Assembly: GCA_010909165.1 (NCBI GenBank)
Contig: VJWM01000025.1
Coordinates: forward strand, 2,852,001 to 2,916,000
Direction: 5' to 3'
From: Anthoceros angustus
Lineage: Eukaryota; Plantae; Anthocerotophyta
Length of the DNA: 64,000 nt
Below the pieces are notes generated by a model. It had not been told where the DNA came from. It worked only from the letters and a program-made list of their open reading frames with translations, and made no database searches. The first letter of the stretch is position 1. Each line of letters begins with the position of its first letter. This document shows, in pieces, positions 19,499-45,479 of the stretch. The translations under genes were made by a program, and so were the position numbers.

Positions 19499-20815
19499 TT
19501 ATTCCTCATTATCCTCTTCCTCGTCACTTCTATCCCTAAGATTTGCTTCTGGAAATTGTTCCATCCAGTCTGGATCCACGTCTGCTATGGATGCATCTTG
19601 CGCTCGTTGCATTTCCATGTCTTCCCTGGACTGCCTAATTGCCTCTTCGTAGTCGGAGTCATATTCATCTTGTTCGTTTTCAAGTGCCTCTCTGGCCTCA
19701 TCTTCCTCCCTTAAAAGGCGCTCCTTTTCCTTCAAATCTTCTGACCACCATAAAATCACGTCACGTTTTTCTTGTTTGTTTCCATTAATTCGCGTTGTAA
19801 AAGGTAGCCACACAGCATCACTAGGTAAAGCGTGCATAGTCATAAGGTTCAGACCACATAAAGGACATACAGTTTCCTCCTCCTCCAAAACTTTAAACAC
19901 GCATTTCAAATGGAATGAGTGACCACACGAAGTTTGTATCCATGAATTACATACTAAAGGATATTTACACTGAAAGCAAATTTGTTGTAGTTCTAAGTGT
20001 GAAAATGTTCTATTTATTTTAAATTCTTTCCATATGTCATCAGGATCGTCATTCATTTGCATGAGCATGGTAACTAACTCCATGTCTCGTTTTTGTACTA
20101 AAGAGGCAAACAGCATAGCCCACATTTTACTCTGCTCTATTTCTGCTGAACCAGGACGAATTAGTGTCGCCTGTGTATCCGTCTCAGGAATCCACGGTCG
20201 AACGTCAAAAGTAAAACCCAGCCATTTTACTGGTTGTTGAAAGTGGATTGGTTGGTTACATTGTCCATTGGGACAAAGGACAGTAGGTAATGTCTCCGGT
20301 GGTAAGTTCATTATGTAGGGCATGAGGCAGTTTACATGAAAGGCATGCCTACAAGGATCCACTCTACACCAATAGTCAATCCACATTATCTCATTACATA
20401 ATACACACCTATCTTTTGATTCATGAACTGGATTTTGTTCCTGGTTAAGTATTAGTTGTCTATTCTCATTTTCTTTTTCCTCCACATGTTTCAGTGCTTC
20501 CCTCTTATGTGCGTCAAGGATTTTACTTAGTTCGCGGTGTACATCTGCATTAGTACCTTCCATTTTATTATTTGAGTCATGAACTTGTTGTGGTGATCCA
20601 TCTAGGGTCCATTTGGTTCGGCAAATTGCACATTGCCTTTCAAATTCTGGTTCTGGTTCATCTTTATCTTCCTCTTTTACTTTACTAAAAAACCATCTAG
20701 CTATGCAAGATGCATGAAAACTATGCTTACAAGGATATAAATACACCCATGTCTCATTTACAAACAATTCTGTACAAAGAATACAATCATCATTGTTCTC
20801 GTCTACTAGATCCAT
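19499..20815 (-). CDS. Intronless triple RING-H2 zinc-finger protein (438 aa), putative E3 ligase with acidic tail and UIM-like motif
   Basis: Three C-x2-C…C-x-H-x2-H-x2-C…C-x(2-4)-C sets: CILC..CKHSFHASC..CAIC; CVLC..CRHAFHVNC..CPNGQC; CFQC..CGHSFHLKC..CPLC. ORF is uninterrupted. Confidence 0.85.
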   Translation of the reverse strand: MDLVDENNDDCILCTELFVNETWVYLYPCKHSFHASCIARWFFSKVKEEDKDEPEPEFERQCAICRTKWTLDGSPQQVHDSNNKMEGTNADVHRELSKILDAHKREALKHVEEKENENRQLILNQEQNPVHESKDRCVLCNEIMWIDYWCRVDPCRHAFHVNCLMPYIMNLPPETLPTVLCPNGQCNQPIHFQQPVKWLGFTFDVRPWIPETDTQATLIRPGSAEIEQSKMWAMLFASLVQKRDMELVTMLMQMNDDPDDIWKEFKINRTFSHLELQQICFQCKYPLVCNSWIQTSCGHSFHLKCVFKVLEEEETVCPLCGLNLMTMHALPSDAVWLPFTTRINGNKQEKRDVILWWSEDLKEKERLLREEDEAREALENEQDEYDSDYEEAIRQSREDMEMQRAQDASIADVDPDWMEQFPEANLRDRSDEEEDNEE

Positions 20816-20816
20816 T

Positions 20817-21090
20817 TCTTGTCAATTTCTTGTTTGAAACATGAAACTCTTTTTAGTCAATTTCTTGTTTGAAAAAGAGAATTTTCTAATCAATTTCTTG
20901 CTTGAAGCATAGAATTTGTTTTAGTCAATTTCTTGGTTGAAACATTGAATTTTTCCCAAATCAATTTCTTGCTTGAAGCATAGAATTTGTTTTAGTCAAT
21001 TTCTTGTTTGGAACAAAGAACTTTTTCTAGTCAATTTTTTTGTTTGGAACATAACGTTTTTTCTAGTTAGTTTCTTATTTAAAACATAAA
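20817..21090 (-). promoter_or_regulatory. About 35-bp tandem array (8 units) directly upstream of the RING ATG
   Basis: TCAATTT cores at 20822, 20857, 20890, 20925, 20961, 20996, 21031 and a degenerate one near 21067. The sense strand reads …CAAGAAATTGAC(T/A)…; the last unit abuts the ATG. Repeat is certain; regulatory role is inferred. Confidence 0.6.
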
Positions 21091-22149
21091 GGCAACAATC
21101 TATATTGAAATGAATACTATACATAGGTAATATTGGAGAACCACAAGGCGAAAACATACTACTTCATTGTATAGGAAAATTCTCTTGGTAGCTTAATATC
21201 AATCAATAGCATCTATAGATAATGACCAAGCTTTCAAATTTCTAATTGAGTAATTTGAAAATGAAAGCGGATGTTTGGGCCACACTATTGTCTATATATA
21301 TCCAGCAAGGTGTTAAATATGTTCTGGTTATAGTAGAGGGCTGTTTTAGGCGCCCTTTTGCCGAATAGTTTAATTTTTTAAAAGATGAAATTTCAACGTT
21401 GCCTAAAATTATTTTCATAAATTTCAACAACAAGGTATCATATTTTCCTTTAATTTGGCACTTATAGATAGTACTAGTGCAAACACATTGTCAATAGAGC
21501 ATAGAAAAGGAAGTAGTCCAGTGGTTAAGGATTTAGTGTGTGTTCAAGTGATCACGGGATTCAAGTGGTCACAGTATCGATCCCGCTACTTATTTGCGTC
21601 CCCAAGAGAGAAGAGGCTTCCCCTGCGTCTAGAATGGTTGCAGGGTTGATCCCACTACCCTATTCACGCCCACGAGCGCCGGGAGGTTTTTGAAAAATAA
21701 TTATTAAAAATTAAAAATGGCAAAAGTAGAAAGTAATTTAATTTCCCCAAAAAGTGCAGGCTCATATGGTATATAAATAATTTATTTTTAATAAAAATAT
21801 AATTTTTTTTTGATAGAGAACATGAAGATTTTATATAAAGTATGCACAGATGGGAAGTCTCATTCACATCGGGGCCATGGGGAACAACACTGTAGAGGGC
21901 CCCAAGCAAAGGGGGAATAGCTCCCCCAAATTGTCTATCCTGGAGCTATCTACTCCTCCCAATATGTTATTGTCTGGAATAAGAGAGGGCCTCCTTATCA
22001 CCAGAGTTGAAGATGTTGCATCCTCCACGTTGAAGCTGTCCTTCAAATTGCGTTTGCCAACAACCACATCTACAATAGAGACCTAGACCCCTCGGGTCAC
22101 AAACAACCCATCCTTGAGAGAAATAGCATAACACAAAGTACATGGGCAC

Positions 22150-25100
22150 TCCTTGAAAGGAAAGAAACCGTTCTCCTTAGCGAACATGATGACCCTCCTC
22201 CATGTTGCAGCACTAGGACTCGCTTGCCTCCTGAACAGTGGCATGAACCTAGATATGCTTCTATCGACTACAAATCCTCATCTTGTACAGTGGATCCTAC
22301 ACAAGTTCGGATGTTCACCTCCACCCCCATGCATGAAGAATCGACCTCTCTTCCACAAGCCTATCAAGGTCCTCAGTCCTCAGTAGAAGATCGCAGTGGA
22401 GGATGAATATCAAAGCCTGATAAAGAACAAGACTTGGGAGTTAGTCGATCTCCCCCAGGGCAGGAAACCTATCTCGTGCAAGTGGGTATTCAAAATTAAA
22501 CTTAATGCACAAGGAGAGATAGCCAAATACAAGGCCTGACTTGTGGCTCGCGGCTTCACCCAAGTCGAAGGACTAGATTACCAGGAAACGTTTTCTCCTA
22601 TTGTACCAGCTCAATCCATTCGGATCATTCTAGCCATTGCCACTGAACTCGACTTGGAGCTTCACCAGATGGATGTCTGTACTGCATTTCTCTATGGTAC
22701 TCTTGATGAAGACCTGTACAAGGAGCAACCAGAGGGTTATGTTGATAAAAGATACCCTAATAAAGTACTGAAGCTGCTCAAGTGTATTTACGGACTTAAA
22801 CAAAGTGGTAGGGTTTGGTACTTTACCATGCATGTATACTTACTCAGCATACCTTTCGTACAGAGCACTACAGACAGTAACGTCTATCGACTCACGAGAG
22901 GAAAGGAATTCGTCATCCTTGCTCTCTACATCGATGATGTCATCCTCGCAGCTACCAGTGAGCACATGTTATCAGAAGTCAAGCTCATGGTAAGCTCAAA
23001 GTTCGGTAAGAAAGATATCAGCAAGTTACGCTTCTGTCTAGGGATACAAATACTAAGGATCAGATCCGAAGGACTTATGATAATCCATCAATACAAGTAC
23101 ATAAATGACACACTGAAAAAGTTTAGATTGGATCAGGCAAGACCAGCTACTACTCCCTACGAAGTTGGAGTTAAACTCACCAGTAAGCAATGCGCTACAA
23201 CTGCTGAGGAGATCCAGGATATGTAAGAAGTGCCCTACAGATACGCAGTGGGCAGCCTATTCTTTGGGGCAAACTGGACAAGACCAGGTATCCAATACTC
23301 GGCATCCACAGTGTCATAGTTCCTAGAACGACCTGGAAGAAGCCATTGGTCAGCCGTCATGCGCATATTTCGGTATCTGAAAGGGACTATGACGTATGGA
23401 CTCTTCTATAAGAGCAGTGGATACAAAAAGTTGGTACTTACAGGGTTTACACACGCCGACTGGGCATTAGACTCTGATTCTCAAAAGAGCCTGAGTACTT
23501 ACTGTCTTCTCCTTGCTAGTGCCACTGTCAAATGGAGCTGCAAGAAGCAGTCCTCTATCGCTCTCTCTTCAACAGAGGCCGAATACAAATCCCTTACGGA
23601 CGCATCTAAAGAAGTTGAGTGGGAACGAAGCTTTCTGAATGATTTGGGCTAGCCACAAGATACCCCCACCTCTCTGTTATGTAACAACATGTTCGCCCTG
23701 GCCCTGGTAGCCAACCCTAAATTCCATGCCAGGACGAAGCACATAGAGATACAACACCACTATATCAGGGATGTCGTGGAAAGAGGTGTTATAAAGGTAG
23801 GTTACGTTGGAATAGATGACAACATAGCCGACATCCTGACAAAGGGCCTACTCAAGCAAAAGCACTTTCAACACATGATAAGTCTGGGATTAGACGACAT
23901 TTCAACGTATTTTGAGCAACCTGCAAAACCTTAGGCCAGCTACTTATCTGGATGTGTGGGGTGGGACTGTTAAGTCCCGATTTGGTTGCCTGAGCAACCA
24001 GTTTGGAGATGAAGAGCCACGAGTGTTTCCTCATCCCCTGCAGCCAAATTCCCTGTTTGAGCGTTGAAGACTTTGGTTAGTTATGCTGTGCAAACAGGGA
24101 GGAGAAAATAAAAAGGAACATGCAACTTAGTAGGGTTGGATGAAGCTTACCACAATATGGAATCAGCCCGCTCTTGTCCTCCTTCGCCTCATATTGCAGG
24201 CTTCACATCTCACTATTCGACTGGCAAGACACCTCAAAACCGCCAGTTCCACTGCAATTCTTTCCAGGTACGCCTTCAACCTAGCATTAATTGGAGATGC
24301 CAGCTCAAAATAGCGGAGGCCTATTTTCTCCTGAACTTCCCTTTCCTCTTTCGGAGCTTGGGCAGTTCCTGGGTAAAGCCTTGTGTGTGCTGGGAAGCTG
24401 TTCACTCGTCTAACCAGCTCACCTAGCGATGCACACCTCTCCCAAGGCAGAGGTGTCTCGTCCACCGTCTTCTTCGTGCGTCTTCTTTATTTTGACGTCC
24501 TCCAGCTGACAATCGTATGTTGTGCCTCTGCGCGTTCTCATGGTTGCGGTGTGGAGGCGCACAGCTTCGAAGTTCTAATGTGAGGAAGCCGAGAGATGGT
24601 GGCGAGAAGGAGCGTAATGGAGAAGGTGTCCATGGCCAACGTTAAGAGCTATGCTTGGGAGTTAGTCGATCTCCCCAGGCGAAACCTATCTCGTGCAAGT
24701 GGGTATTCAAAATTAAACTTAATGCACAAGGAGAGATAGCCAACATACAAGGCGACTTGTGGCTCAAGCTTCACCCAAGTCGAAGGACTAGATTACCAGG
24801 AAACGCTTTTCTCCTATTGTACCAGCTCAATCCATTGGATCATTCTAGCCATTGCCACGAACTCGACTTGGAGCTTCACCGGATGGATGTCTCACGCATT
24901 TCTCTATGGTACTCTTGATGAAGACACATATAAGGAGCAACCAGAGGGTTATGTTGATAAAAGATACCCTAATAAAATCAAGGCTCAAGTGTATTTCTGG
25001 ACTTAAACAAAGTGGTAGGGTTTGGTACTTTACCATGCATGTATACTTACTCGGATACCTTTAAATGACTCAGACGATGCGTCTATCGACTCACGAGGAA

Positions 25101-26958
25101 AGGAATTAATCATCCTTGCTCTCTACATCGATGATGTCATCCTCGCAGCTACCAGTGAGCACATGTTATCAGAAGTCAAGCTCATGGTAAGCTCAAAGTT
25201 CGGTAAGAAAGATATCAGCAAGTTACGCTTCTGTCTAGGGATACAAATACTAAGGATCAGATCCGAAGGACTTATGATAATCCATCAATACAAGTACATA
25301 AATGACACACTGAAAAAGTTTAGATTGGATCAGGCAAGACCAGCTACTACTCCCTACGAAGTTGGAGTTAAACTCACCAGTAAGCAATGCGCTACAACTT
25401 CTGAGGAGATCCAGGATATGTAAGAAGTGCCCTCTGAGATCGCAGCAAGGCAGCCTATTCTTTGGGGCAAAACCGACAAGACCAGTATCCAATACTCGGC
25501 ATCCACAAAGGTCATAGTTCCTAGAACGACTACAGAAGCCATTGGTCACCGTCATGCGCATATTTAGATCCAAGGACTATGACGATGGACTCTTCTATAA
25601 GAGCAAAGTGGATACAAAAGTTGGTACTTACGGGGTTTACACAGTGGATTAAGCATTAGACTCGATTCTCAAAAGAGCCGAGTACTTCATCTTCTCCCTA
25701 GCTGCCTTGTCAAATGGAGTCGCAAGAAGCAGTCCTCTATCGCTCTCTCTTCAACAGAGGCGAATACAAATCCCTTTAACTTACCCAAAGTTAGTTGGAG
25801 GGGAAGGCTCTTGATTTGGCTAGCTACAAGAAATCCCCACCTCTCTGCATGTACAAGGCTTCTTGCCTGCACGTAGCCAACCCTAAATTCCATGTGATTT
25901 GCTATTATAGATACAACACCACTATATCGTGGATGTCGTGGAAAGAGGTGTTATAAAGGTAGGTTACGTTGGAATAGATGACAACATAGCCGACATCCTG
26001 ACAAAGGGCCTACTCAAGCAAAAGCACTTTCAACACATGATAAGTCTGGGATTAGACGACATTTCAACGTATTTTGAGCAACCTGCAAAACCTTAGCCAG
26101 CTACTTATCTCGGATGTGTGGGTGGACTGTTAAGTCCGATTTGGTTGCTGAGCAACCGGCTAAGAGATGAAGAGCCACGAGTGTTTCCTCATCCCCTGCA
26201 GCCAAATTCCCTGTTTGAGCGTTGAAGACTTTGGTTAGTTATGCTGTGCAAACAGGGAGGAGAAAATAAAAAGGAACATGCAACTTAGTAGGGTTGGATG
26301 AAGCTTACCACAATATGGAATCAGCCCGCTCTTGTCCTCCTTCGCCTCATATTGCAGGCTTCACATCTCGCTGCTCATTCGACGGCAGCGGCACACCTCC
26401 AGCAGCCAGCAAAAGTTCCAATTCTGCAATTCTTTCCAGGGCTGCCTTCAACCTAGCAGCCAGAATTGGAGATGCCAGCTCAAAATAGCGGAGGCCTATT
26501 TTCTCCTGAACTTCCCTTTCCTCTTCGAGCTTGGCGGTTCGGTAAAGCCTTGTGTGTCTTGGGAAGGCTCACTGCCTAACCACTCACCTAGCGATGCACA
26601 CCTCTCCTTGCGTAGGTGTCTCGCCCACCGTCTTCTTCGTGCGTCTTCTTTATTTTGACGTCCTCCAGCTGACAATCGTATGTTGTGCCTCTGCGCGTTC
26701 TCATGGTTGCGGTGTGGAGGCGCACACTGAAGCTCAGAAGTTCTAATGTGAGGAAGCTGAGAGAGATGGTGGCGGCGAGAAGGAGCGTAATGGAGAAGGT
26801 GTCCATGGCCAACGTTAAGAGCTATGCTTGGGAGTGGTGCTGGTACACTTTGGAGCGTAGAAGTTCCCGGCAGTCTGAATGTCTTTTAAGTACACTTTAG
26901 CTTAACCTATAGGTGCTTTAAAGAGAGTGTTGAATATAAAGCAGACCCCTAGTTAACA
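22150..26958 (+). mobile_element. 5'-truncated Ty1/copia retrotransposon (RT, RNase H, PPT, 3' LTR), internally duplicated
   Basis: TWELVDLP..KPISCKWVFKIK, YKA*LVARGFTQ, QMDVCTAFLYG, LYIDDVI, SSTEAEY, RTKHIEIQHHYIRD, NIADILTKGL with in-frame stops. Purine-rich tract, then LTR TGTTAA (23968 and 26128) … TTAACA (26958). Confidence 0.92.
22433..26835. repeat. Tandem duplication of a 2.2-kb unit (22433-24653 and 24654-26826)
   Basis: The 9-mer CTTGGGAGT occurs at 22433, 24654 and 26827. Long near-identical stretches alternate with indel-rich patches. Confidence 0.93.
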
Positions 26959-27030
26959 ATAGCTGTTTAGGGTTAAGTGAAGCGTTATAAACATACGTAT
27001 AAAAGGCACATTACTATACATTTTTGACAT

Positions 27031-29063
27031 TCATATTTCTATTCCTACGTATAAGAGTTTCTTGTATGTTTGCTCCTCCCTCTCCCCAATCGAAATAAGC
27101 TTATCCCTAAATATATCTTGCCTAGACATCTCTAAAAGCTTATCATGATTAATGTGTCCAAGGCGAGAATGCCATAATAGGGAGTGACCTTTGCACAAAC
27201 TCCCTTTGTCAACCGCAGTTGCCATTGCGGGAGCTGAGGTCGAGGAAGCCGTGATCACTTGCGCGGCAGAGAAGACATAGAGGTCATGCCGCGGACGACC
27301 TCTTGCAACCAAATGACCAGGAGCAACAGATCTTGTGAGAAGGAAATGGCCTCTTCCGAATTCTAGCCTGAAGGTACTGTCCTTCACCAAGTGTCAGATG
27401 GAGATACGATTCTTCGCCATTTGTGGAACATGCAGCACATCACTTAAAAGAAGAACAGAACCATCTTCAAGAGTGAAAGTAATAGTGCCAGTGCCCGCAA
27501 TGGTAAGGCCGGAGTCATCGCCGAGAAGAATAAAACGTTGATCTTCGGCAGGAAGATGATCAGAAAACATATGGTGATGGCAACTTATAAGTGTGGAGGC
27601 AGGTGAGTCCAACAGCCAAGAGGTCTTCTATTCGAAAGCTACCAAGCAGACTGTGAGGGAAATGTCGGACTTCTTCTGCTTGGAGGTCGAGGTTGTATTG
27701 GCAGTCTTGGAAGGACGTCGAGGCTCGCCAGCTTTCTTCATGCGGCAGTCAGGCTCCCAGTGGCTTGGAATCTGGCACCAATTGCAAGTACCGGGCTTGC
27801 GGCCGAAACCACTAGGCTTGGAGAATGAAGGGTTGCGAGAAGAAGCCGGAGTAGGCACATGAAGGCCGTCATCGTGGAGGATGGTGCTGGATGCATTGGC
27901 GTTGACGACATTTGCTGCTAACGCTCTTTCACCACCATGCTTCAAAGTGCCGGCGTTAAATCTGGAAGCCTCCTCTTGTAGGAGAGCGCCGACAATTTTG
28001 GAGATGGAAATGTTGGGTGTTCGGCCAGCCTTTACCGCCTGATGAGCCTCTCGAAACGTGCTATACATGACCTTCCCGCTAGTGTCATCCTGATACTGTC
28101 GGAGAACCCAGAAGACAACATTATTCAGTACTTCAACTATCCAGACCTCTTGACTCGATGCTGACCACCTTCAAGGTGCTTGCCCCTTCATGGCAAGGCA
28201 GTGGTATGGGAAGCCATTGGCAGGAGACCTGGCTGCCTTGCCTGGTGTGGGGCAACTTTCGCTAACGGACTAGTCCGTTAGTTAGCAAGGTGCACACTTA
28301 TAACCTAATGTCGATGTAGTACTGGGGTTCGTTCCACGGGGAATGGACTCGTGCTTATTCTACCTAAGCTCCACAACTTGTTGCCTAAACAGACTTCAAC
28401 ATGTCGGGTCCGGCGGAAACCGCGAAACCTAGGCGGGTGCCACTTAGCAACTCGACGGACCGGACGCACAACCCACCAGACCTTCCTACAAAGCTTTGCT
28501 TAGGGTATCTCAAAACACCGTTTAAGGTTCGGTGGACCGGAATAGGTTTAGCGATGAGTTCCTCCATCAGTCTCCGTACCCTAGTGCCTCGGCGCACATA
28601 CCTCCGTAGCTCCGCATCTTCCACCCCACAACTCTCGACTCCATTTAACAGCAACCCCAATGCAAGGCACAGGCCGCAGTGTCGTCCTTCCTTCTTCTTT
28701 ACTCGCCCACAACTAGCATAGAGAACACCAACATGTCGACGTATTCACACCGGACCGCCTTTGCTCCTTCCGATTGCTTTGCATTCCGTGAGGTAGTGGC
28801 TTCTCAGCCTACAAACCCACAGCCTCTAGGGATGGCTTCCACACGGAGGGATCACTCCTAAGCGCCTCTTTATCTTTTCGACTGCTTCACGTTCCGCGAC
28901 GTAGTGACTTCGCAGCCTACAACCCCATGGCCTCCGTTCCAGCAGCCACCAAGGTTGGCCTCGCGCCGAGGGATCACTCTTGAGCACCCTCCTGAGCTCA
29001 AGTCCGATCCTGGTCTGCACCCACCAAGCGTGTTAACGGAGCTCATCACTAGAGCTCTCGACA
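27031..29063 (-). mobile_element. 3'-truncated Ty1/copia element: 5' LTR, PBS, deleted gag, protease, GAG-pre-integrase
   Basis: LTR 28309-29063 bounded by TGTCGA…TCGACA. PBS-like GGTTAT just inside. Zinc knuckle CNWCQIPSHWEPDC, protease-like DSPASTLISCHHHMF, LWHSRLGH motif. Confidence 0.8.
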
Positions 29064-30019
29064 CATCCGCCTACCCCAATTAATCCTGCAAGGTGACGCA
29101 GGAACACACTCTGCTCCTCGGCAAGAGGAGCAGAGCACACAAAGTGCGAGGTTGGCACAAGGGATATCTCTTGGTCTTGGGTGCTTAGGCCTGCTCATAT
29201 ACCCCCACACCCTAATCTAACCCGCCTATATTTGTACCCTAACTCTAGGCTGTTGCAACCGCTAGGTCGTAACTCGTCATTTCGCTGGCCTTCTTCCATC
29301 GTCCCGCACCCCCGCCAGGCAGCAGATCCGTTACCGGACTACACCGCCCGGCTGGACCATCTCGCGAAGCCATTCCCCGTAGGACCGACTGTGTCGAGGC
29401 ATACTTCAACGGACTTACTTCGGCAAACCTCCCTGCAGATCATATCTCCCCCTCGCCGGATTACCCTATCTCGACGGACGAGTCCAGCACTCGCTAGACC
29501 TCTTCGGTCCCCAACGGACCGAGGGTCTAGGGATTGCACTCTATGTGCAATTTGGCCAAAAATGGCCTTATTGGCTAACTCCTTCCTATCCCTATTAAAA
29601 AGTAACAACTCAAAAGAAACAAAACAAGCATAAAACAAGCCGCCGGGGTTATGAACATCGGATTTGGTACTCTACACCTGGGTATGCCCTCCCCCGTCTA
29701 CAAAAAACCAAGCTAAACACAGACCTTAATCATATGTGTTGTAAGTGGAGTGCACAAATTTTTGAGCAGCAGGTGGCGGACTCTGCTGACCTGAGGGTCT
29801 GCCTTTTTCTTAGGAAGAAGGGAAGGCAGGGAAATCAATTATGGATCCCGGACATCGAAAATTTGTGGCTATTCGTTGTGCCCTTAGGTTAAATATGTAA
29901 TAATTTACATTTAAATATATACTCTATATAGGTAATTGGAAAACCATAAGGACGAGACTTCGCATCCCTCGCCATTGTGTAGGAACATTCTTTTGGGCAC
30001 TTGATATGAATAAGCATCC

Positions 30020-30310
30020 ATAAATAATGACTAAAACTTTTAAATTTTAAATAAAATGGATTAATTTGTATTAATAATTAAATTATAACTATAACGTAAT
30101 AACTATTATAATTTTAGTATAAATTATTATAATTTAATTATAACTAAATATAGTTGTAACTATTATAGTTTAGATTAAATTATACTATTAAATTAAATAT
30201 AGGAAACCTATTTGTTTATAATTAAATTAAATATTAAGTTTTTCATAAAGTATTTAAAATTTTGATTTGGAATTTTGATTCTTTTTCAAATTTTGATTTT
30301 CTTTTTGTTC
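30020..30310. repeat. Extremely AT-rich low-complexity tract
   Basis: Almost exclusively A/T, with short ATTATAA/AATTAAAT-type reiterations. Confidence 0.8.
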
Positions 30311-30319
30311 TTGGGTTCC

Positions 30320-31480
30320 TAAGAGATGTCCAAACATTGGGAAGCTAAGATTCTGTGGCAGATCTGCCACAGTCTGGTGATCGTAGTCTGCGAGTGAGAG
30401 AAAAGATCGAGACATGATGAGCGTTCTGTTCTTCCCAGGGTAACATACTGTCATCTCGTTCCTCGGCCGATAACAAACTTTGTAGAGTGCATTATCCAGA
30501 ATCTGTTCATGCCAAAGAGAATGCAACATGCCAGAGCTGTTGCTGTGCTAATTGGCTTACGTTCCTCAGGTTCGTGCCTGCCCAGGTACAAGGTTACCAA
30601 GTCCCCTGTGAAACGTTAACGGTGAGTCCGATTTGAGATTGTGGGAATGGTGTTTCAACAGCACACTTCATCCATGATTAGGGTATTCCGGGCAGTGATT
30701 CAGAGACCACAGAGTACGTGAATCTCATACATGCACTGCGGTTGCAGCGGCAGGCAGCAAACTTACACAGTCCTGGCTACTGCAACAGAAATTTACTCAA
30801 GCTCTCTACTTTCCTTTCCTTTCAATGTTGGCGAGCTGGCAGATTTCGAGGCAATCAACAGAAGTGTTGAGCGGCGGACAAGTCCACACTTCGAGCACGT
30901 ACACGATGTGTAAGATACTGGGTCACTGCACTGAACACTGTCCAACGCTTCACATGCTGTCACTTTGTTTCTGAGTGACTTACTGGCCTACACCTAACGC
31001 AGAGATGTTTTATACATGAACAACGTTCAGTGCTGACTAGCGTCCAACTCCCCAGTGCTGGGCTCTCAACAATCTGAGCCACCTTTCAGTTGTGCACTTC
31101 TGCAAATTACCTGGCTTGTCCAGATCTCCCAATTGAAGATGCTGCTCTCTTTGTGGACTACTTTACGTGAGGTACTGTCAAGGGTGTCGAAAAATTCACT
31201 CTGACTTTCTCTAACACCCCCTAGCTTGATGACTGTCCCAGACTGCCATAGTATGAAAGCAGGGCACATTCATCGTGATCAGCAGTAGATCAGCAACAGC
31301 TACTTCAAATCAATTCTGATTGCTGTCTCAAGAGGTCAGACCACAGTTAATGCCAGTTCCTTGTGTATCACGTTCCCCGGTCCGGGGAGCATGATGAGTC
31401 ATAGACGCCAGCCGAAGGCTTCCAAGCCGAGCCGGGCTTTTCCAATTACTTATTCGTGGGCTTGAGTTTCACCTTTCGAC
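30320..31480 (+). pseudogene. Scrambled partial copy of the PTP1 gene (homologous to about 2858-4440, introns included)
   Basis: Matching blocks include GGGAATGGTGTTTCAACAGCAC, GTGACTTACTRGCCTACACCTAA, GTTGTGCAC..TACCTGGCTT, TTCATCGTGATYAGCAGTA and GTTCCC..GTCCGGGGA. The WPD loop and HCSAG catalytic motif are destroyed. Confidence 0.8.
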
Positions 31481-31591
31481 ATGAGCTACTTACTGGTAGC
31501 ACATGGTTCATTCAGTTTCTCCCTTGCAATCTACCGCAATGCATTCTTCTTCAGCCTGGATGGTGATGAGGGTCCAACATAGTTTTTTTTC

Positions 31592-32944
31592 TCAATCCAT
31601 ATAGCGAAGACCTTGGGGTTCGTAATCAGTAGGATCCCAATCTGGCGGAAAGTTGGATTCGCCATTTCCATACCCATCTTCACCATCCGCACCATCCCCA
31701 CCACCCTCAGCATCACCACTATCATCGAAATCAAGACTATCATCAAAATCACGACTATCATCAAAATCACGACTATCATTATAATCACCACCATCATCAG
31801 AATCACCACTATCACCACTATCAAAATGGCTATCAAGCTCCCGTAGCAGCCTTCTAACATGCAGCAAATCGCCCAGCCACCAGATTATCACTTCACGTAC
31901 TTGATTCTTACTTCCATTGATTCTTTGGAGTAAAGGTACCCACAAGGCATCGCTAGGTTGTGGGTGATCAAGGAGAAGACATAATCCACATACGGGACAT
32001 ATATCATCATCCTCATCAATCATCTCATACAAACATACAAAATGAAAGGAGTGACCACATGAAAGCAATAACCAATAACTACATGCCAATGGAATTTTAC
32101 AGTGAAAGCAAATTTGTTGTAGTTCTAAGTATGAGTACGTCTTAGATCTTCTAAATTCTTCCCATATATTATTAGGTGAGTCACAAGCTGTTACTACAAG
32201 AGTGTTCAACTCGGCATCCCTATTTATTACAAAGAGCATATATGTGTGGGCCCACATAATCAATTGTTCTACCTCTAAGGAGTTTTCATGAAGGGGTAGA
32301 TATCTCAAGTCCTCTCGACTGATAAATGGGCGAACCTTAAAAATACTTTTCCATGTTAAAGGATCTTGAGTGTGAATTTGTAAACCACACTCTCTTTTGG
32401 GACAATGGATGTTAGGCAGTTCAGTATAATTCAGCGTCCAAATGTAATTAGACATGCACATCACATGAAAAGCATGTCTGCAAGGATCTAATCTACACCA
32501 AAAGCCAGGGGAAAATGTTTGGTCACAAAGTGTACATAAATCTCTTTGTTCATCAATTGGATTTGATAATTCATTAAGAGCTATTTGTTTATCTGCTAAT
32601 TCTATTTTGTTTCGTGCAAGAATGGCTTTTTCCCTATGATTTTCAAGCAAATTATTCAATGCATTGTCTACTTCAATATTAGTAACTTCTTTTTTATTTT
32701 TTGGGTCATGGACTTGTGGAGGAGATCCATCTAATGTCCAAACACTTCGACAAGTTGGACATTGCTTTTTAAAGGGTGGATCTAGATTATTCATGTCATC
32801 CTCTTTAATAGTGCTATAAAACCAGTTTGCCACACAAGATGCATGAATACTATGATTACAAGGGTGCAAATACACCCATGGTTCGTTTACAAGTACTTCT
32901 GAACAAAGAATACAATCGTCATTGTTCTCATCTGCTAGGTCCAT
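31592..32944 (-). CDS. Intronless triple RING-H2 protein (450 aa), paralog of 19499-20815, with D/G-rich repetitive tail
   Basis: All 24 zinc ligands conserved: CILC..CNHSIHASC..CPTC; CTLC..CRHAFHVMC..CPKREC; CFHC..CGHSFHFVC..CPVC. Same N-terminus MDLxDENNDDCILC. ORF is uninterrupted. Confidence 0.85.
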   Translation of the reverse strand: MDLADENNDDCILCSEVLVNEPWVYLHPCNHSIHASCVANWFYSTIKEDDMNNLDPPFKKQCPTCRSVWTLDGSPPQVHDPKNKKEVTNIEVDNALNNLLENHREKAILARNKIELADKQIALNELSNPIDEQRDLCTLCDQTFSPGFWCRLDPCRHAFHVMCMSNYIWTLNYTELPNIHCPKRECGLQIHTQDPLTWKSIFKVRPFISREDLRYLPLHENSLEVEQLIMWAHTYMLFVINRDAELNTLVVTACDSPNNIWEEFRRSKTYSYLELQQICFHCKIPLACSYWLLLSCGHSFHFVCLYEMIDEDDDICPVCGLCLLLDHPQPSDALWVPLLQRINGSKNQVREVIIWWLGDLLHVRRLLRELDSHFDSGDSGDSDDGGDYNDSRDFDDSRDFDDSLDFDDSGDAEGGGDGADGEDGYGNGESNFPPDWDPTDYEPQGLRYMD

Positions 32945-35900
32945 TTTGAGTCAATTTTTTTACCAATCAATCTCTTTTTCCAAAACAAAAACTCTCTAAT
33001 CATAAAGACAATTATTAACGAGTATCTAGAACTTCCACTATATATATGAAAATTTTATAACCAAGACCAAGAAATGACACTATATTTATGAAAATTTTAT
33101 AACTAACAAGCAAGAAATGACACAATGAGTAATGTTGTTCACTTGCAATGTTCAATAGTCAATTTCTATTCGAAAGCATAAACCTCTCTAATCATAAAGA
33201 TAACTATTTAAGCCACTTCTATAACTAAGTGCAGAAATGAAAAAATAAGCGGTGTCCTCCTCAATCACAAGAAGCTGATCCCAGACCTCTTTATAGATGG
33301 GCCTCACAGTCCTAACAATAAAAGGATGACACTTCAATTTAGGTATAAAACATGTATCTCCAAGGATTGATGCATGGGCCTCACCGCCTTTAAACAAAAG
33401 AATGACACTTCAATCAATTCATTTGGCTCTAAGCCATCAGTCCCGAAGGAATTGATTCTAGGAGATATCTACTGAATTGAAAACACTCATGCTAGGGCAT
33501 ATTTACGAAATTGAAAACACTTCAGCCAAGAAACTGTAATTTTGTTTTAAAGACAAAGCCAATTGGTTCACGAGATGTGTCAGGTTCCAGTGCAAACAGT
33601 TGCTATACCTAATTTAAATTTAATCGAACTGAAAATCTATAAATAATGATAAATTTTCTTGTCTGTTAGATAAATAATTATTTTATATGAATACAAATAA
33701 TCCTTTATAATATTTATTATTTAATATAATAGTTTACAAGGTATTACCTCTAAACTAACACTTCGTCATTTGCAATCCATAAAAAAGTGTACATTTTATA
33801 TGTATTTATTTTAAAACACTTTGTGATAATGTTAGCACCTATTCCCACTCATGAGTAAGGACAGAGTTTTATTGGATTTTTAAAATTTACCATAAATAAT
33901 AATAATAATCTAGGCATCATTAAGCAAGTTAAGTTGTATTTTATCTATGTTATAATATTATCGCTGATTTATTCTTTTAAGTTATGTAAATCACCTAAAG
34001 GTTTATTCTAATTTAGAAAATTAAATTATTTTTATCAATTTTAGAACAATTAGCATATGAGACTAGGCATTATTAAGCTGGAGAAATTAGATATAAAAAC
34101 CTAGCACAGGGATGGGCTGCATATGTAAGTGGATACAAATCAAATGGACATTAAAAAGTTGTTGTTGTTGTATATATCACTACATAACAAGGAGCAACTC
34201 AAGGCGAGCCAGAAGCAAGGCATGTAGGCATCAATCTTTACAACCATTTATTTAGACAATGAATGCTTTATTATATATAATTTCCATATATATTTAAAAA
34301 AATCCGAGTATATTGGAATATTTTTTATTTATCTATTCTCTCGAGACCTGTAGTTGTGGGGCCCTCTCGACTACTCTGGGACCTACTTAGCTCACTGTCC
34401 AATATGTGCGCAGCGCATTGGGACACATGATGCAATCCGAAATGTTATGTTCTACATTGCCACAGAGCGCATTCTGTTCTTTCACGAAGCGCCCATATAC
34501 TTTGCCTAACTGTATTTCTTTGAGGGTTAACATGTTTTTGATCCAAGTAGGCCTTTTCCTGTTCTAGACTATGACATTTTGGGAGCGATAAGTAGCTTAA
34601 GAGTAGACATTCATGGAGCCTAGTCTCCCTTGGCCTGGGGCCCTCTAGAGGGTTGTTCTTCATCACCCCAGTGTAGATGGGACTTCCCATCCCTGCATAT
34701 TTAGATGGGTCTCCACGTTTAAATCCATATTAATAAAATTTATTCAATTCACCTTTTCATCAAAAATATTTTTATAGTATAATAAACCTGGATAAATATT
34801 TATCTATGTTATTAAGTGCGTGACCTTTGCATTTCCTAAAACATGTACAAAAGTTGTTGTTTATAAATAGGATCACAAGTTCATGTGGTATGTTGGGAAA
34901 AAACTTATTTCGTTATCCATGTTTTTTTTTTCCTTGATGACTTTATTCTTTCTGTGTTTTGAAATGGTTATCTTTTAACAAATCAACCACCAGGGTGCCA
35001 TCCATTCATCTATAATCAATTGTTGTCCTCAGGATGACATACTAAAGATATAGATCGTATTAAAAAAAATTCATATGTTTGAGTGAGGGCTAAAGCTCTT
35101 GTTGTTTTGATGTTTTAGAACTCGAAAGGATTACGAAATTCAAATTTCCTTAAACTAAAATGATGAGAGGCCATGATCTAGTTTTTAGCTAGATTTCGAC
35201 TATTACTAATTATAGTTTACTATGGTCATCAATATTTAATTGCATTCAATCTTCTTGAACTAAAATGATGGGACGTTTTCATTTAGTTCTTATCTTGAAT
35301 TTGATTACTCATAATAATAGTATACAACAGTCATTAATCTGATATGGTATGAGTGGGATAAAATATGTTCAAGGAAAGGAAGAGTCTAGCTTGGTAAATA
35401 AGGCAAGATTCTCAATTGTATGCAAAAGCTATGGCTCATACTGACCCTTCTCAAAAATGTGGAATGTGTGAGATTGCTTCAAAGTTGTCACACCAACACA
35501 TGGATGGACATAAGGAGAAGTTGACGGTAATTATCCTTTTGGATGTCGAAGAAGGTTGCTTCATTAACAAAAATATGCAAAGGGGAATATGGGAGAAAAT
35601 AAGCCTAAACTGGCCCCAGGGTTAACAACGCCATAGGGAGCGAATTGTTTTTTAAAGAATTTAGAGACTTTATATAGATATTGCAAAGTACATATAAAAA
35701 TCCCACACTTGAAGTTTTTTTAGCCTTGAGTAACCCGGCAGGGCACTAACTACTGGAGTTTGTAATATGGTGATCTAGATGGCCCTTACATTGCAGAGAC
35801 CTGCGGCATCATTAATAACTAAAGAATGGATGACAACCCTGCCTCGACCTGCAGCATCATTTATAGCTAGAGATTGGATGACAACCCTCCAGTAGGACGG

Positions 35901-36230: not shown

Positions 36231-38560
36231 TCAACATGGAAAAAGAGAGGTCGTTGCTCGTGAGATGGTTTCAGAGTCATCGTCCAGCGGAACTTCGTTT
36301 GGATCTACGGCACTGTTAGCGATAGCTTCCGGGTCATCCAAATTTTCTTCTTCGTCGAGTAATATTTCGTTTGGATCGCCTGTGCAGTTAGAAAATAGAA
36401 CCCAGATGAAACTACGATGCCTCTTGCTTGGTCCAGTAAGGTCATGGGAGCATATAAGTTGGAATGCAAAATTGCTGCCAGACTTACCAGTCAGTTCGGG
36501 AGCGGTCTGTCCATCGTTGGCAAGTCTACTTCCAGGATCCGGGGCTGCATCCAGCTTGTATGGCAGATCCAGCAACTTCAGAAAGTCTTCTGTATGAGGG
36601 TTCCTGTAATGGACTGTTGATATCCTCAAAGATCAGAACTTGCAGAAGGGGCGGTTGCAGAGGGGCGCCTCTCCTACTGAGTACTTGTGCTGGGCATTGT
36701 AGAGAGAGTGGAGTACCTTTCATGGCTGTGCGGTTCCGTCTTCCCTGACTGGGATTGTAGGGCGGCGCAGTTACAGAAAAGGCATTTGGAATAACGTTGC
36801 CGTTTTGCAGTAGTCTTTGTTGCACCCATTGCCTGTGCCCCCTTAAGTCTTTCCTGGTTCTGGGAACAAACATGATCACGGGCAGAACGGTTGAGTGTCA
36901 GTTTGAACACTGTTCAGTGACGCAGATGAAACCATGGGCAAACATTCTGGCATGGCACCCTACATCGTTTCCCAAGGTCTGCCTGAGGAACGCCTGCTCA
37001 AAGGGAAGTAGGGGTCATACACCCTGGTAATTGCAAGCCATTCCTCATCATATGTGAACTCAAGAGCTCCATTCGCTTCAGGAAAATCGACCACCTGTGA
37101 CGACAAGACAGAGGTCATATTTGTGCCTGATGTCCCATTACTTCCTTCCAGTCACTCATCAGAGTTTTCCTCGGCATCTTAGGTGACTTTGAGGATCAAG
37201 AAGAGAGTCAAACGAGCGAAAGAAATAATCCTTCACACAAGAACCAATGAAGACATCATTCAGGATAAGCTGATATACCCACCTGCAGAAATTTCCTTCG
37301 TGGCAGGCACTTGTCCAGAGCGAGGAATCTAGTGGAGGAGCCACTAGAATGCGGAACTACAGCAGCAAATTTGGTATGAAGATGAGCCGAGAACCAGTAA
37401 GCTGGCTTCAGTTTACTCAGAAGTTGTTCTGCAGGAAGGCTTCCTAAAGTGTTATCCTCCACCTGGATGACATAAATTACTGGACACTTCAGGGCACCAT
37501 TGCCACACTCAGAAGACGATCCTCTAACGAGCAAAAGGCAGGTAACCTGGCATCAGCCCTAGAACTTAACAAGAGACAAACAACTAATCCACAATCCATA
37601 CCTGCCGTTGGAAGAATGGTTTGTTCCGAAGCAGCTCTTGCAGATCTCCAAATTTGCTGATGCCTCGAGGCCAGTCGTGAGAAACAAAGACGTCTATCCC
37701 CTCTTCAATGCTCATCAGTTTGTGGACATCATAGGAGCGCACATGATAGATTGAGCGGATGTCATGGTGATCATAAGGTGCTCGCTCATAATGTCCTGCT
37801 TAGGGCCCACTACAACAGCTAAGCAAGAACAACAAACAAACAACAAAGCAGTCATAACTACGACGAAAAAGGCTCCAAACACTTGACTTGCCTGAATGAT
37901 AGTCATGTGACTTGTATATGCCAGACAAACCACCAATGCGTATGCCCCCAAAGTTAATCACCCCGGCAACTCCAAGGAAGTAAATATTCCTTGCAACCCA
38001 TCCACCATAGTAACTAACCTAGTCATACCAGACCACAAGACCGCTGCACAATTTAGTCCCAACAAATCCTCCAACCCCACGAAAGAGTTCACACAACACC
38101 CAAAGACTGCGTCATGAGACTTACAGCTCCCACAGATAATTGGATGCCTCGTGGTTACCTCCAACAAAAACCGTGGGATACGGTGCAACTTTCTGGCCAG
38201 AATAATACTTCCAAAAGCTGTTCATGGCACGATACTTCACAGGACATGCCAGGGACTCGAGATCCTCCTGGTTCCGAACAGCCTGCAAAAAAGAAACCCT
38301 AATCAGTGCTTCAAAAACCACAAAATGCCAACTTCCACCACCAAACTCACCTGGAAGTCTCCACAGCAAATGAGGAGATCAATTTTGGTCTGCTCCACAC
38401 GCTCCAAGTGGTGCAGCGTGGCGTAAATATTGTCCAGATCTCCATGAGCGCAGCCTTCCACTGCAATCTGCAGGCCGAGTCAGCCCTAGGAGCGAGACAA
38501 AGGGCAGGCAAGCGAGAGCTCGAATGCTGCACAACATAGGCGGAGTGTGGCCACCTTCAT
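36231..38560 (-). CDS. DBR1: RNA lariat debranching enzyme, multi-exon
   Basis: MK|[15 protein letters not shown]…LICCGDFQ|AVRNQEDL…[16 protein letters not shown]|YYGGW…SHDWPRG…[12 protein letters not shown]…[15 protein letters not shown], and a DPNEILLD tail. Confidence 0.95.
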
Positions 38561-39083: not shown

Positions 39084-42000
39084 ATGGAGCCGGAGGTGCG
39101 CACCAGGCCGCAGAGGAAGCGGGAATCTCCCAAGTTTACGGAGGTGTTCGAGACGGACGATGAGCAGGAGGATGAGGATCAGGACGAGGTGGAGGAGGAT
39201 TCCGACTCCGAGGACCTGGCTCCCAAGAGGCGGAGGCGGGGGAACGACGGTGGCCGTGCCAAGGTCTGTTTTCCTGTATTTTTTGGAGTCTGGGTGGGGA
39301 AGGTTTGGGGAATTGGGGTGGTGCGTGTGTTCAATTTCGCGGTTCTGTGGTGAATTTTGCTTAAAAGTGTGGCTGGATGGCAGAAACGGGCGAAAGGGTC
39401 TGTGCCGCCGAGATTACCCCTGGCTGTGGGCAAGGGGCGGGGGACCGGGCGGAAGCGGAAGAAGCCCGAGGCGGAGGATGTGTCCGGGAGCAGCTTGTTT
39501 GAGATCGTGAAGAGCAATGGGGAAGCAGTGCAGGAGGCCGCTCGGGAGTGGCTGGTGCGGTACGAGACTGACAGGGATGCTGCTGTCACGGAGCTGCTCA
39601 CCATGTTGTTTCAGGCATGCGGATCTAGGTACGTGATGGAGGATGCCGGGACGGATGTGGATGAGGCTGTGGAGACCATGGTTGCGCAGGCTAAGGTGGG
39701 GAATTTGGATGATAGCATCGGGTCCAAGAAGGGGGATGTGCGGAATTTTAAGAGCAATCTTGAGGCCTTCTGGGAGGCCCTTGTGCTGGAGTGCCAAGAA
39801 GTGGCTCTTTTCGACCAGTATTTGATGGACAAGGTTATGGATTTCGTTATCGCTATTTCCTGCACTCCGCCCAGGAATTTTCGGCATGTGGCAACGCTGG
39901 TCGGGCTGCAACTGGTGAGTGCTTTCGTGACTCTGGCTAACACGCTTTGCCGAGCCCGTGAGACGAAGCAGCGGCAGCTGAATGCAGAGAGGAAGAGGAA
40001 TAAGGGGGGTCCTATGCTGGCCGAGGCGCTCGCCAAATCTCTGTCCGAGACTCACGAGAGGATCACGCATGTGGAGGAGATGATGCGGAAGATATTCACG
40101 GGGCTTTTTATGCATCGGTATCGAGACAAGGATGAGAATATACGGGTGGCCTGTGTCTCGTCTATCGGCTCTTGGATTGCATCCTACCCGTCCTTGTTTC
40201 TGCAGGAGCTGTATCTGAAGTATCTAGGGTTCCCGCTGAATGACAAGCGGCCCAATGTTCGGAACAGTGCCATTCTGGCTCTGCAGGCGCTGTATGCGGT
40301 GGATGCATACGTTCCGTCTTTGGCCCTCTTCAGTACACGCTTCTGCAGTCGGATGGTTGAATTGGCCGATGACATCGAAGTTAGCGTGGCAGTGAATGCG
40401 ATTGGCTTGTTGAAGCTTTTATTCAAGCACCAACTTGTTCCGGACGAATACTTAGGCTCCCTTTTTGACCTGCTGATTGATGACCAGGCACAGATTCGGC
40501 ATGCTGTGGGGGACTTGGTCTATGAGCACCTAGTTATTCAGAACCCCAGCTCTGACCCAAAGTCACTTGAGGAGCCTGTGGAAGCCGAGCTGGATCGAAT
40601 ACTGCAGATACTTCGGGAGTTCTCAGCTGATCCCATTCTCTCGGACTATGTGATCGATGCATTCTGGGATAAGAGCAAGGCGATGAAGGACTGGAAATGC
40701 CTGCTGTCTATGTTGTTGGATGAGAAACCAAGGATTGAGCTGGCAGATGGGGATGCCACGAACCTCATCAGAGTGCTCTTGGCGTCAGCTAAGAAGTCTG
40801 TGGGAGAAAAGATTGTGCCTTCATTGGAGGTGCGGACAACTGATCATCGGAAGTCGGCAATGAACAAGGCTCAGAAGGAGGCCCTGGAGGCTGCCAAGGC
40901 TGAGATGACTTCTGCTTTGATGAAGGCCTACCCGAAGCTGCTCAGGAAGTTTCTTGTGGACCGCGGCAAGGTGGCTGCCATAGCGGAGGTTCTGTTGTTC
41001 ATGGATCTTCAGTTGTTTTCAATGAAGCGCAAGGAGCAGGAGTACACATCTGCGTTGCACTTGTTGAAGGATGCTTTCCTGAAACATGGAGATGAGGAAA
41101 CGCTTAGAGCTTGCATCAAGGCTCTGTCATTTGCTCTCACCGACAGCCACGCTGACCTACTGGATACTGCCCAGCTGGTGGTTAGCGAGACCGTGGATGA
41201 TCTCACTGTGAAGCTCAGACATGCCATCAGCCACGCAGGGGAAACAGAGGATGAGTATTCCCTGATTGCAAACTTGAGAAGGATGCATCACATGCTGTTG
41301 GCGGTGCCTGTGACTAATGAGAGTCTGTTCACAGAAATGCTGGGGCTGATCAAGGAGTTCAACTACTTGGATGACGAGGTCATCAGGCTGGTTTTGTTGA
41401 ACATGTTTCTGCAAGTTGCATGGTTACTGAAGACCATTGATGCTGACCGTCCTGACGACGCGGCCATCCAGACCTTGATAGCCAGGAGGAATAGCTTGCT
41501 GGAACAGCTGCGCTGTTTTGGAGAAAGCGTGTACGACAGTTGGGAAAGCGGAAGTCCGAGGAGCCCTCTGAGCAGCACCATATGCGTCATTCTGTCCGAC
41601 GTGTGGAGCTTATTTTCTGAGGAGAAGCTGGCGCCCACTAGATTGCATAAATTGGGAGTGTCTCCTGATGATGATTTTCTGCGCCACTTTTGGAATCTGT
41701 GTCAGCACAAGCTTTTTGCCAACGATGACGCTGAGGAAGCAGCTGAAGACCACAGTGAGTACTTGGACGAGAAGGTAGTGGTTATGTCTGCAGCCGCAAA
41801 GCTGGTGGCTAACAGGTTGATTCCCTCGGACTTTCTGGGGCCAGAAATTGTATCCCATCTGGTGCTGCATGACAACATTGTGTCCGAGACGGTGAAGCAG
41901 TTGGTGGTTTCTCTGAGGGAACAGGAGACGCCCGAGAACGTATCTCACCTCTACCTAGAAGCAATGAAGAGAGCTCACCGGCGGTTTCTGGACGAGTCTG

Positions 42001-43064
42001 AGGACAGCTGGTCCACCAAGGATTCGTACAACACCTGCAAGGAGCTGGCACTCCGGCTGAGCGCAACTCTCAAACGGACTGCCAAGACCACCATCCTCAA
42101 GATCGTCAAGGGAGGCATCAAGCACGCGTTTGTGGATTCTCCCAAGCAGCTCACGTTCCTGGAGGTCGGAGTGCTACAATTTGCAGCTAAGCTCACGTCT
42201 GCGGACCTGCGGCCCATCTACGACCTGATGGTCTCCAGGATGCAAGGCATCAACACCGACGAAGACCCTAGCGGCTGGCGCCCATGTCTCGTCTTCCTGC
42301 AGTACCTGAAGGAGAAGTGCTCCATCACCGACGTCTCCGCCGACAAGGGCAGCGGCAAGCGAGGCAGGCGCAGGGCGGCGGCCATCAAAGGCGGAAAGAA
42401 GCTCTTCGACGGCCAGGACACTTCCGAGGAAGAGAATGCTGACCCCATCTCCAGCGCCTCCGGGGAGGCCGACGAGGAAGAGGAGGACGAGGACGAGGAG
42501 CGCGTCGTGCTGGCCAACATGAAGACCGCCCGCACTGCTCGCCAGCGAGCAGTGAAGGCGAAGACGAGCAACAAGGCAGCCGCAGCTACGACCGCGGCTG
42601 CGTCCACCACCCCAACCACCAGCGAAGCCGACCACCAGCAGAGATCCGAGAAACGTGTCTCCCACCAAAGAGATGACGTCGCCAACACTGCGACAGAGGA
42701 ACAGCTTCCTCGAGGACCTGCCGCCGCAGATCAAGAACAGGACCAGACTGTGAGCAACCAGGAGGAGCCATCCTCGAACGGCGACCAGTCGGTCGACGCC
42801 CTCTCTCCTGCTTCATCAGGGCAAGCTCATCAGAGACTCGAGACCTGGACTGAAGAGCGGCTCCCTGGGAGATACACTCGGAGGCGATCGCGGAGCCGAG
42901 GAGATGACGAGGGAGCGTCCCCTAGTGAAGAAGCGTCTGCTGGGAAAGAAACGCCCTTGTTGAGAGAAACCTCCTCTGCCGAAGAAGCGTATCAGAGAAA
43001 GGACACTTCTTCTGGGAAAGAAGCGTCTCCTCCAGCTAGCATGTCAGCTGGGACTAACAGGTGA
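39084..43064 (+). CDS. SCC3: Cohesin subunit SCC3/STAG with a single 5' intron (about 39263-39383)
   Basis: STAG-domain motifs RNFRHVATLVGLQLVSAFV, LFMHRYRDKDENIRVACVSSIGSWI and YLKYLGFPLNDK, in a continuous exon of about 3.7 kb. Acidic first exon MEPEV…GRAK. Confidence 0.93.
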
Positions 43065-44919: not shown

Positions 44920-45479
44920 GCCGCTGGGCCTGGAACGAGGGAGCACGTTGTGTGCGCCCCAATCCCGGTATGTATCATGAGGCATCTATCTACATACATA
45001 TGTACGTAGGTGTAGTAACGAGATGACGAGTGCTGTCATATTGTGGATAAACGAGGGCATGCTTGGACATGATTGGACATGCTATTGCACTTCGTTGACG
45101 GTGCATGCCTGCAGCTGGAAATGACTTCCTGCAGCAGACTTGATGGGTTTCATCAGCAACGGGAGTGGCCGCGGTTCCAGCTTATCCAGTCTCTAATATG
45201 CATAATCAGGGGATGGTCGATATTCGCAATTAAGGCTGAATCAATCTGAAACCAACGATTTAGGGTGAATTAAGCTACACCCAGTTCATGGCTTCCATGA
45301 TTCTCGATAGCAGAGTTGTTAGCTTCTCTCCTATCTTGGGAGCATACCTATTCTTCTCTCTCATCTTATTCACGGAGGAAACCTTTATGCAGCAAGGAGC
45401 AAAGAAAAATGAAGAAAGTAAGAGAATAAGTTAGCATTTGAATGATGATACGGGGCTCAAACATAACTGACAAACAGCC

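Follow-up and report, generated by a model that had tools for sequence, protein, structure and literature searches.

Two intact genes of a putative, fast-evolving triple-RING-H2 ubiquitin ligase family in a repeat-rich region of the Anthoceros angustus genome

A putative ubiquitin ligase family with three RING-H2 domains per chain

The stretch of Anthoceros angustus DNA analyzed here (contig VJWM01000025.1, positions 2,852,001 to 2,916,000 of the forward strand; 64,000 nucleotides, hereafter called the window, with positions counted from its first letter) carries two paralogous genes, A and B, that each encode three RING-H2 domains on a single chain. Judging from their sequences, A and B are probably functional genes of the host. 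They would belong to a small and locally duplicating family of triple-RING-H2 E3 ubiquitin ligases that evolves fast and is restricted to one deep, poorly sampled land-plant lineage. Their layout adds a new domain architecture to the RING E3 superfamily and is not that of the RBR, MIB, PRT1, or ATL proteins. An earlier note written from the letters of the window alone had proposed a selected multi-RING family of putative ubiquitin ligases that is unusual beside ordinary plant RING-H2 and RBR proteins, and both parts of this proposal are supported by the results described below.

Gene A (19499..20815, minus strand) is a complete single-exon coding sequence of 438 amino acids plus stop that ends in an acidic C-terminal tail, and gene B (31592..32944, minus strand) is an equally complete single-exon coding sequence of 450 amino acids plus stop. 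Both are single, uninterrupted open reading frames (ORFs) that start from a conserved methionine, lie on the same strand at a distance of 12.1 kb, and are the only two copies of the family within the window. The two proteins are 49% identical over 373 residues (BLASTP, E 4e-138), and their acidic tails cannot be aligned. We thus recover the two intronless, uninterrupted paralogs of about half identity that had been read from the sequence by eye. The Asp/Ser-rich tail of B is encoded by about 6 to 8 tandem copies of an 18-bp (6-codon) repeat (31676..31843, minus strand), so this tail grows by replication slippage. A 109-aa ORF that runs antisense over the same repeats is an artefact of the repetition.

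Organization and conservation of the three RING domains

In protein A, RING1 spans residues 11 to 65 (20621..20785) and is a RING-H2 domain whose last ligand pair is preceded by a long insert, RING2 spans residues 137 to 186 (20258..20407) and is RING-H2-like with a last pair of the form C-x4-C, and RING3 spans residues 280 to 320 (19856..19978) as another RING-H2 domain, with both RING2 and RING3 lacking an Arg after the last Cys. The family alignment places the corresponding domains of B at residues 11 to 65 (32750..32914) and 137 to 186 (32387..32536), and alignment to A places its RING3 at residues 279 to 319 (31988..32110); all six domains are encoded on the minus strand. The ligand pattern C-x2-C...C-x-H-x2-H-x2-C...C-x2-C matches three times each in A, B, and their full-length relative P0001, and the C-x4-C spacing at the end of RING2 in A and B is the sole and minor departure from it. 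None of the 24 ligand columns varies among A, B, and P0001, which is only 25% to 27% identical to the window proteins; the claim that every zinc ligand is kept hence extends beyond the two paralogs for which it was made. The Pfam model zf-RING_2 (PF13639) scores 50.3 bits in A, 43.1 in B, and 46.6 in P0001 against a cut-off of 27.3, and its match covers three stretches in each of A and B.

The RINGs lie 70 to 95 residues apart in the chains of A and B, and the linkers between them as well as a Trp-rich motif after RING3 are conserved across five or six family sequences in the alignment, so the whole architecture has been kept and not the RINGs alone. The three modules resemble each other over their RING cores only (25% to 33% identity, hhalign probability 87% to 97%), a likeness to be expected of any RINGs, and an internal triplication of one RING module appears possible from these sequence comparisons. 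An AlphaFold model of A, weak as a whole, has its best part in RING2 (pLDDT, the per-residue confidence score, of 75 to 81) and predicts long helices for the linkers and for the segment ahead of the tail. Sequence and fold matches in the PDB are all canonical single E2-binding RINGs, i.e., those of RNF25, TRIM21, RNF2, AMFR, and RNF38 (E2, ubiquitin-conjugating enzyme). RING1 has its best PDB match in the RING of RNF25/AO7, and RING3 matches TRIM21, RNF2/RING1B, AMFR, and RNF126. No PDB match found by either the sequence or the fold search spans two domains, and with so weak a model the fold matches reveal little apart from the individual domains.

A RING contacts its E2 through a hydrophobic residue, a Trp, and a Pro at fixed positions and through a terminal Arg, the “linchpin.” All five sequences that cover RING1 have the hydrophobic residue, which lies between Cys 1 and Cys 2 of the domain, together with a Trp four residues past ligand 6 and an Arg immediately past the last Cys; with the exception of A, they also have a Pro following ligand 7. 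The hydrophobic residue and the Pro are present in RING2 and RING3 as well, but these two domains carry Asn, Gly, Asp, Leu, or Lys in place of the Arg. Since RING1 alone combines the full set of E2-activating residues, it would be the catalytic RING of these proteins. We therefore picture A and B as soluble, putative RING E3s with three RING-H2 domains in fixed order, conserved helical linkers, and a variable acidic tail. Based on these residues and on established RING biochemistry, RING1 may activate the E2~ubiquitin conjugate, and RING2 and RING3 would probably be structural or partner RINGs within the same chain or, alternatively, substrate-binding modules. RING E3 ligases usually dimerize or pair with a second, inactive RING, and such inactive partners are known from the RING1B-BMI1 and BRCA1-BARD1 pairs. 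A single chain with three conserved RING-H2 domains and no IBR domain would be a compact model of RING cooperation.

Relatives and mode of evolution

The family is very rare. When 1.84 billion protein representatives were searched exhaustively with HMMER and without a length filter, 15 matches were obtained at E <= 0.001, and just one of them is full length: P0001, a protein of 404 aa (E 2.7e-38) that spans profile positions 4 to 373. Three others are family fragments (P0003, P0004, and P0009), and the remaining matches are generic RINGs, including a Nymphaea E3, a Juncus RBR-type protein, and proteins of Tetrahymena and Pristionchus. A word-index search with A alone found no relative, the same type of search with an alignment of A, B, and P0001 found P0001 only, and a scan of metagenome contigs found no relative either. 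A query for exact matches to A returned no record.

P0001 and the three fragments all come from one genomic contig of 8107 bp (L001) in sample SRR33208241. This contig carries three family copies within 8 kb that are 41% to 51% identical pairwise, with an intact copy in the middle between two broken ones, of which the first has at least two frame disruptions (L001 1052-2258, minus strand) and the last at least one (L001 6770-8061, plus strand). Three copies in 8 kb, two of them broken, are a birth-and-death pattern. The family probably grows and decays via local duplication, and the two copies in the window would have been split later by copia insertions.

The relationship of the two source organisms can be read from SCC3/STAG, a neighboring cohesin gene in the window. 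The encoded protein is 45% to 55% identical to its homologs in liverworts, mosses, lycophytes, ferns, and seed plants, and its closest homolog is the Logan protein P0017, which is 73% identical and comes from the same sample as P0001, so the triple-RING family is common to two related land plants. In a distance tree, the SCC3 proteins of the window and of this sample form one deep clade outside those named land-plant groups. By exclusion, this position would fit the hornworts, which are the one major land-plant lineage lacking a named homolog among the listed matches, though a fast-evolving SCC3 could mimic it. The RING proteins are only 25% to 27% identical between the two species, compared to 73% for SCC3, indicating that the RING family evolves fast.

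Over their alignable body, the coding sequences of A and B are 62% identical, and their substitutions amount to 141, 113, and 166 at codon positions 1, 2, and 3, respectively, with the fewest at position 2. The ratio of nonsynonymous to synonymous divergence (dN/dS), which the earlier note had asked for, is roughly 0.38 by the NG86 method and 0.61 by LWL85, and constraint is strongest in RING1 (dN 0.20). When we simulated neutral drift over half of the observed distance between A and B (20,000 simulations), the ORF remained open in 5e-5 of cases per lineage and on average acquired 13 stops. Together with dN/dS values below 1, this implies that the ORFs have been held open by selection, and our results support the conclusion that selection kept A and B open for most of their separate history.

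Several points weigh against the view of A and B as functional, vertically inherited host genes. The synonymous divergence between the paralogs is near saturation (dS ~1.1 to 1.2), which makes the dN/dS values rough, and values of 0.4 to 0.6 would equally fit relaxed constraint. The collections that we searched hold no expression records for either species. With two broken copies out of three in the related species, genes of this family are lost often, and the case for vertical inheritance is based on two species only. Furthermore, contig L001 carries no host gene, and the neighbors of SCC3 differ between the two species; a comparison of the SCC3 surroundings in both found no common neighbors. 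At the protein level, the structure model of A is weak (mean pLDDT 56; predicted template modeling score 0.36), and the division of labor among the three RINGs was deduced from residues alone.

Comparison with known RING-type ligases

Each domain of A and B has the same eight-ligand pattern as the canonical RING-H2 (C3H2C3) E3s RNF25/AO7, RNF38, Arkadia, and rice EL5, and the RING of RNF25 has a long insert ahead of its final ligand pair, as does RING1 of the family. Unlike these proteins, A and B combine three RINGs per chain with helical linkers of their own and carry no other known domain. Proteins of the ATL type are built from an N-terminal transmembrane segment, a GLD motif, and a single RING-H2 domain, a layout from which the family differs already at its N-terminus: RING1 of A and B begins at residue 11 after an acidic start, leaving no room for an ATL-type hydrophobic segment.

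The RBR ligases (parkin, HOIP, and ARIADNE; RING1-IBR-RING2) likewise carry several zinc-binding RING-like modules per chain, and RING1 of a Juncus plant RBR protein (P0012) indeed matches weakly (E 3.7e-4) over the RING2 region. However, RBR ligases end in an Rcat domain that binds zinc linearly and contains a catalytic Cys, whereas all three domains of A and B, including the third, have the cross-brace spacing of a RING-H2 and not that of a linear IBR or Rcat domain, and the RINGs do not abut each other. A Pfam search at E <= 1 found no IBR domain (PF01485) in either protein, in line with what had been seen by eye, and the PDB yielded no RBR structure either, whether by sequence (E <= 0.01) or within the listed 40 fold matches.

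Other proteins share only the combination of several RINGs. Mind bomb (MIB1) has three RINGs per polypeptide as found here and is an animal protein with MIB/HERC2, ZZ, and ankyrin domains, none of which was detected in A or B (Pfam, E <= 1). Of its three C-terminal RINGs, one reportedly carries the activity (bioRxiv 10.1101/2024.03.01.582834), much as we propose for RING1 of the family. Arabidopsis PRT1 is a plant E3 with tandem RINGs and a ZZ domain (PMC12370974), i.e., two RINGs plus ZZ where A and B have three RINGs without ZZ. Neither MIB1 nor PRT1 came back as a match in the searches with the family.

TRIM5alpha needs three RINGs together, of which two form the enzyme and the third serves a different purpose (PMC9675739, PMC6299210), and its family is also fast-evolving and tandemly duplicated, making it an analogy for the cooperation of three RINGs. 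The differences are considerable, since the RINGs of TRIM5alpha come from three chains on a lattice and since A and B have no B-box, coiled coil, or SPRY domain. The likeness to the RING of TRIM21 is limited to the domain level and to RING3. By analogy with TRIM5, one could imagine the family as a three-RING machine on one chain, with one active RING and two partners, that arose in a single deep, hornwort-like land-plant lineage and whose birth and death are driven by genetic conflict such as the restriction of viruses or retroelements; we regard this as a rather unlikely scenario.

Base composition

As stated in the earlier note, A and B are clearly more AT-rich than the host genes of the window. 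The GC content at third codon positions (GC3) is 0.33 in A and 0.28 in B, compared to 0.67 in SCC3 and 0.72 to 0.81 in a gene for a GH20 beta-hexosaminidase, and both RING genes match the DNA around them, which has a GC content of 0.33 to 0.44. The ratio of observed to expected CpG is 0.30 to 0.44 over A and B and 0.30 to 0.52 in the AT-rich blocks (19 to 21 kb and 32 to 36 kb), compared to 0.8 to 1.0 in the GC-rich host genes, and these low values are consistent with long-term cytosine methylation of the AT-rich blocks. The low GC content is most simply read as the outcome of mutational decay in DNA that is methylated and rich in repeats. In the related species, the GC3 of the RING gene (0.43) is close to that of SCC3 (0.52) and of a PPR gene (0.49). 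The composition gap is thus nearly gone there, which means that the AT-richness in the window is local and no foreign signature. Repeat-induced point mutation was considered as its cause and rejected, as the respective indices are normal and the host is a land plant.

The family is an example of lineage-restricted genes under selection inside transposon-rich, CpG-depleted DNA. Its odd base composition is explained by its location, and nothing that we found shows mobility or a viral origin.

Alternative explanations for the origin of the two genes

The earlier note had interpreted A and B as element-borne, for example as Helitron cargo, or as horizontally acquired, for example from an endogenous DNA virus, and neither interpretation is supported. 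Spread as cargo of a transposon, be it a Helitron, a Pack-type element, or LTR (long terminal repeat)-mediated retrocopying, would fit the intronless state of A and B next to the intron-containing neighbor DBR1, and the intervening copia fragments as well as the AT-richness that both genes share with the surrounding repeats point the same way. However, many ordinary RING-H2 genes of plants lack introns as well. The flanks offer short matches between the surroundings of A and B (21757-21996 with 34545-34790 and 21094-21246 with 29899-30052), which would be in favor of common cargo and are inverted or displaced. Beyond these, A and B lose their similarity some 40 bp before the ATG and, at the other end, where the tails diverge, and no terminal inverted repeat, LTR, or long direct repeat brackets either gene, a test of the flanks that is weak because neutral flanks would be unrecognizable at 38% coding divergence. 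No ORF for a transposase or a Rep/helicase was found in the window, and two same-strand copies 12 kb apart here, plus a tight cluster of three in the related species, are what local duplication leaves behind. Altogether, we consider transposon cargo an unlikely explanation.

Descent from an endogenized large DNA virus, or another horizontal transfer followed by domestication, could account for the extremely narrow phyletic distribution, the atypical composition in the window, and the repeated A/T-rich word directly upstream of both start codons, and giant viruses do encode many RING proteins. Yet the upstream word is absent from the copies of the related species, where the composition gap has nearly vanished as well, and the sole real relative lies on a plant genomic contig as part of a cluster. 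No viral protein with the same architecture was found in IMG/VR or BFVD, and there was none in the metagenome contigs: IMG/VR contains only a generic single-RING giant-virus ORF of 182 aa that matches residues 7 to 66, and the viral fold library BFVD gave single-RING matches only, none at E <= 0.001 and with template modeling scores of ~0.1, using the weak model as the query. The AT-rich blocks of the window (12 to 22.5 kb and 29.6 to 39 kb) encode no capsid, polymerase, or packaging ATPase and, besides A and B, no large ORF, with the largest measuring 137 and 150 aa; among the ORFs scanned, we detected only copia and host domains and no transposase, Rep/helicase, or viral hallmark. An ancient capture or transfer is unsupported, and we judge a viral or otherwise foreign source to be highly improbable.

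It is scarcely credible that A and B are decaying relics, i.e., recent pseudogenes or ORFs that never had a function. The dN/dS values that are not very low, the two broken copies out of three in the related species, the location in CpG-depleted and probably silenced DNA, and the lack of expression records in the collections searched could all be read in this way. Against it, more than 430 codons have remained open at 38% nucleotide divergence (p ~5e-5 for each gene under drift), conservation of the linker motifs and of all 24 zinc ligands reaches down to 25% identity, and codon position 2 has the fewest substitutions. We thus return to functional, locally duplicating host genes as the best explanation for A and B.

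Upstream regions of A and B

A tandem array of ~35-bp units in 7.7 copies, which can also be read as units of 68 to 71 bp, directly abuts the start codon of A (20815..21090, minus strand) and is probably its promoter or 5′ leader. The word GAAATTGAY is repeated in this array: it has eight matches in the window, compared to 1.6 expected, and six of the eight are located in the array, to which alone its enrichment in the window is due. Upstream of B (32945..33208, minus strand), about 35 bp adjoining the ATG can be aligned with the sequence upstream of A, a 50-bp module is present twice at a distance of 192 bp, as is a 42-bp unit, and a word related to GAAATTGAY is found directly upstream of the ATG. 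We considered GAAATTGAY as a promoter word of the whole family and rejected this idea because none of the copies in the related species has the word upstream; the 35-bp array may instead be a species-specific regulatory array of A.

Farther out, a repeat of ~250 to 400 bp with 69% identity is found upstream of both genes (21757-22174 and 34464-34790), in opposite orientations relative to them. An adjacent segment at 21540-21680 resembles a tRNA or a short interspersed nuclear element by eye, and neither ARAGORN nor Rfam reports anything there. In the window as a whole, the tRNA and Rfam scans likewise returned nothing.

Genomic neighborhood

The description of A and B as embedded in decayed transposon DNA stands for the interval between the two genes, which contains copia fragments, but not for their immediate flanks, which are AT-rich repeats without recognizable transposon proteins. 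Between A and B, a 2.2-kb block is present as a tandem duplicate with 90% identity (22433..26835, plus strand), and each copy carries a Ty1/copia reverse transcriptase fragment (22543-23226 and 25022-25423, plus strand). It is followed by a copia gag/pre-integrase fragment on the opposite strand (27031..28068, minus strand; domain stretch 27031-27390), and this arrangement of gag and reverse transcriptase pieces requires either a rearrangement or two or more truncated elements. With no open copia stretch longer than 227 aa, pol is badly truncated. Elsewhere in the window, two copies of a 2.4-kb sequence with 89% identity abut each other as a tandem duplication (7237-12084) that has no Pfam match above threshold.

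The host genes of the window include one for the lariat-debranching enzyme DBR1, which lies in exon-like pieces at 37256..38369 (minus strand), so host genes in this region do contain introns. The neighboring SCC3/STAG gene (39357..43064, plus strand) is one uninterrupted ORF of 1235 aa, and its counterpart in the related species is equally a single ORF (1305 aa; L003 4475-8392) that adjoins an E-motif PPR gene. The SCC3 genes of other land plants have many introns, and the intronless state in both species suggests either a lineage-wide loss of introns or replacement by a retrocopy. The GH20 beta-hexosaminidase gene mentioned above (43210-44999, minus strand; GC 0.68) is split over two overlapping ORFs, indicating an intron or a frameshift, and a mitochondrial carrier gene is also found among the host genes of the window.

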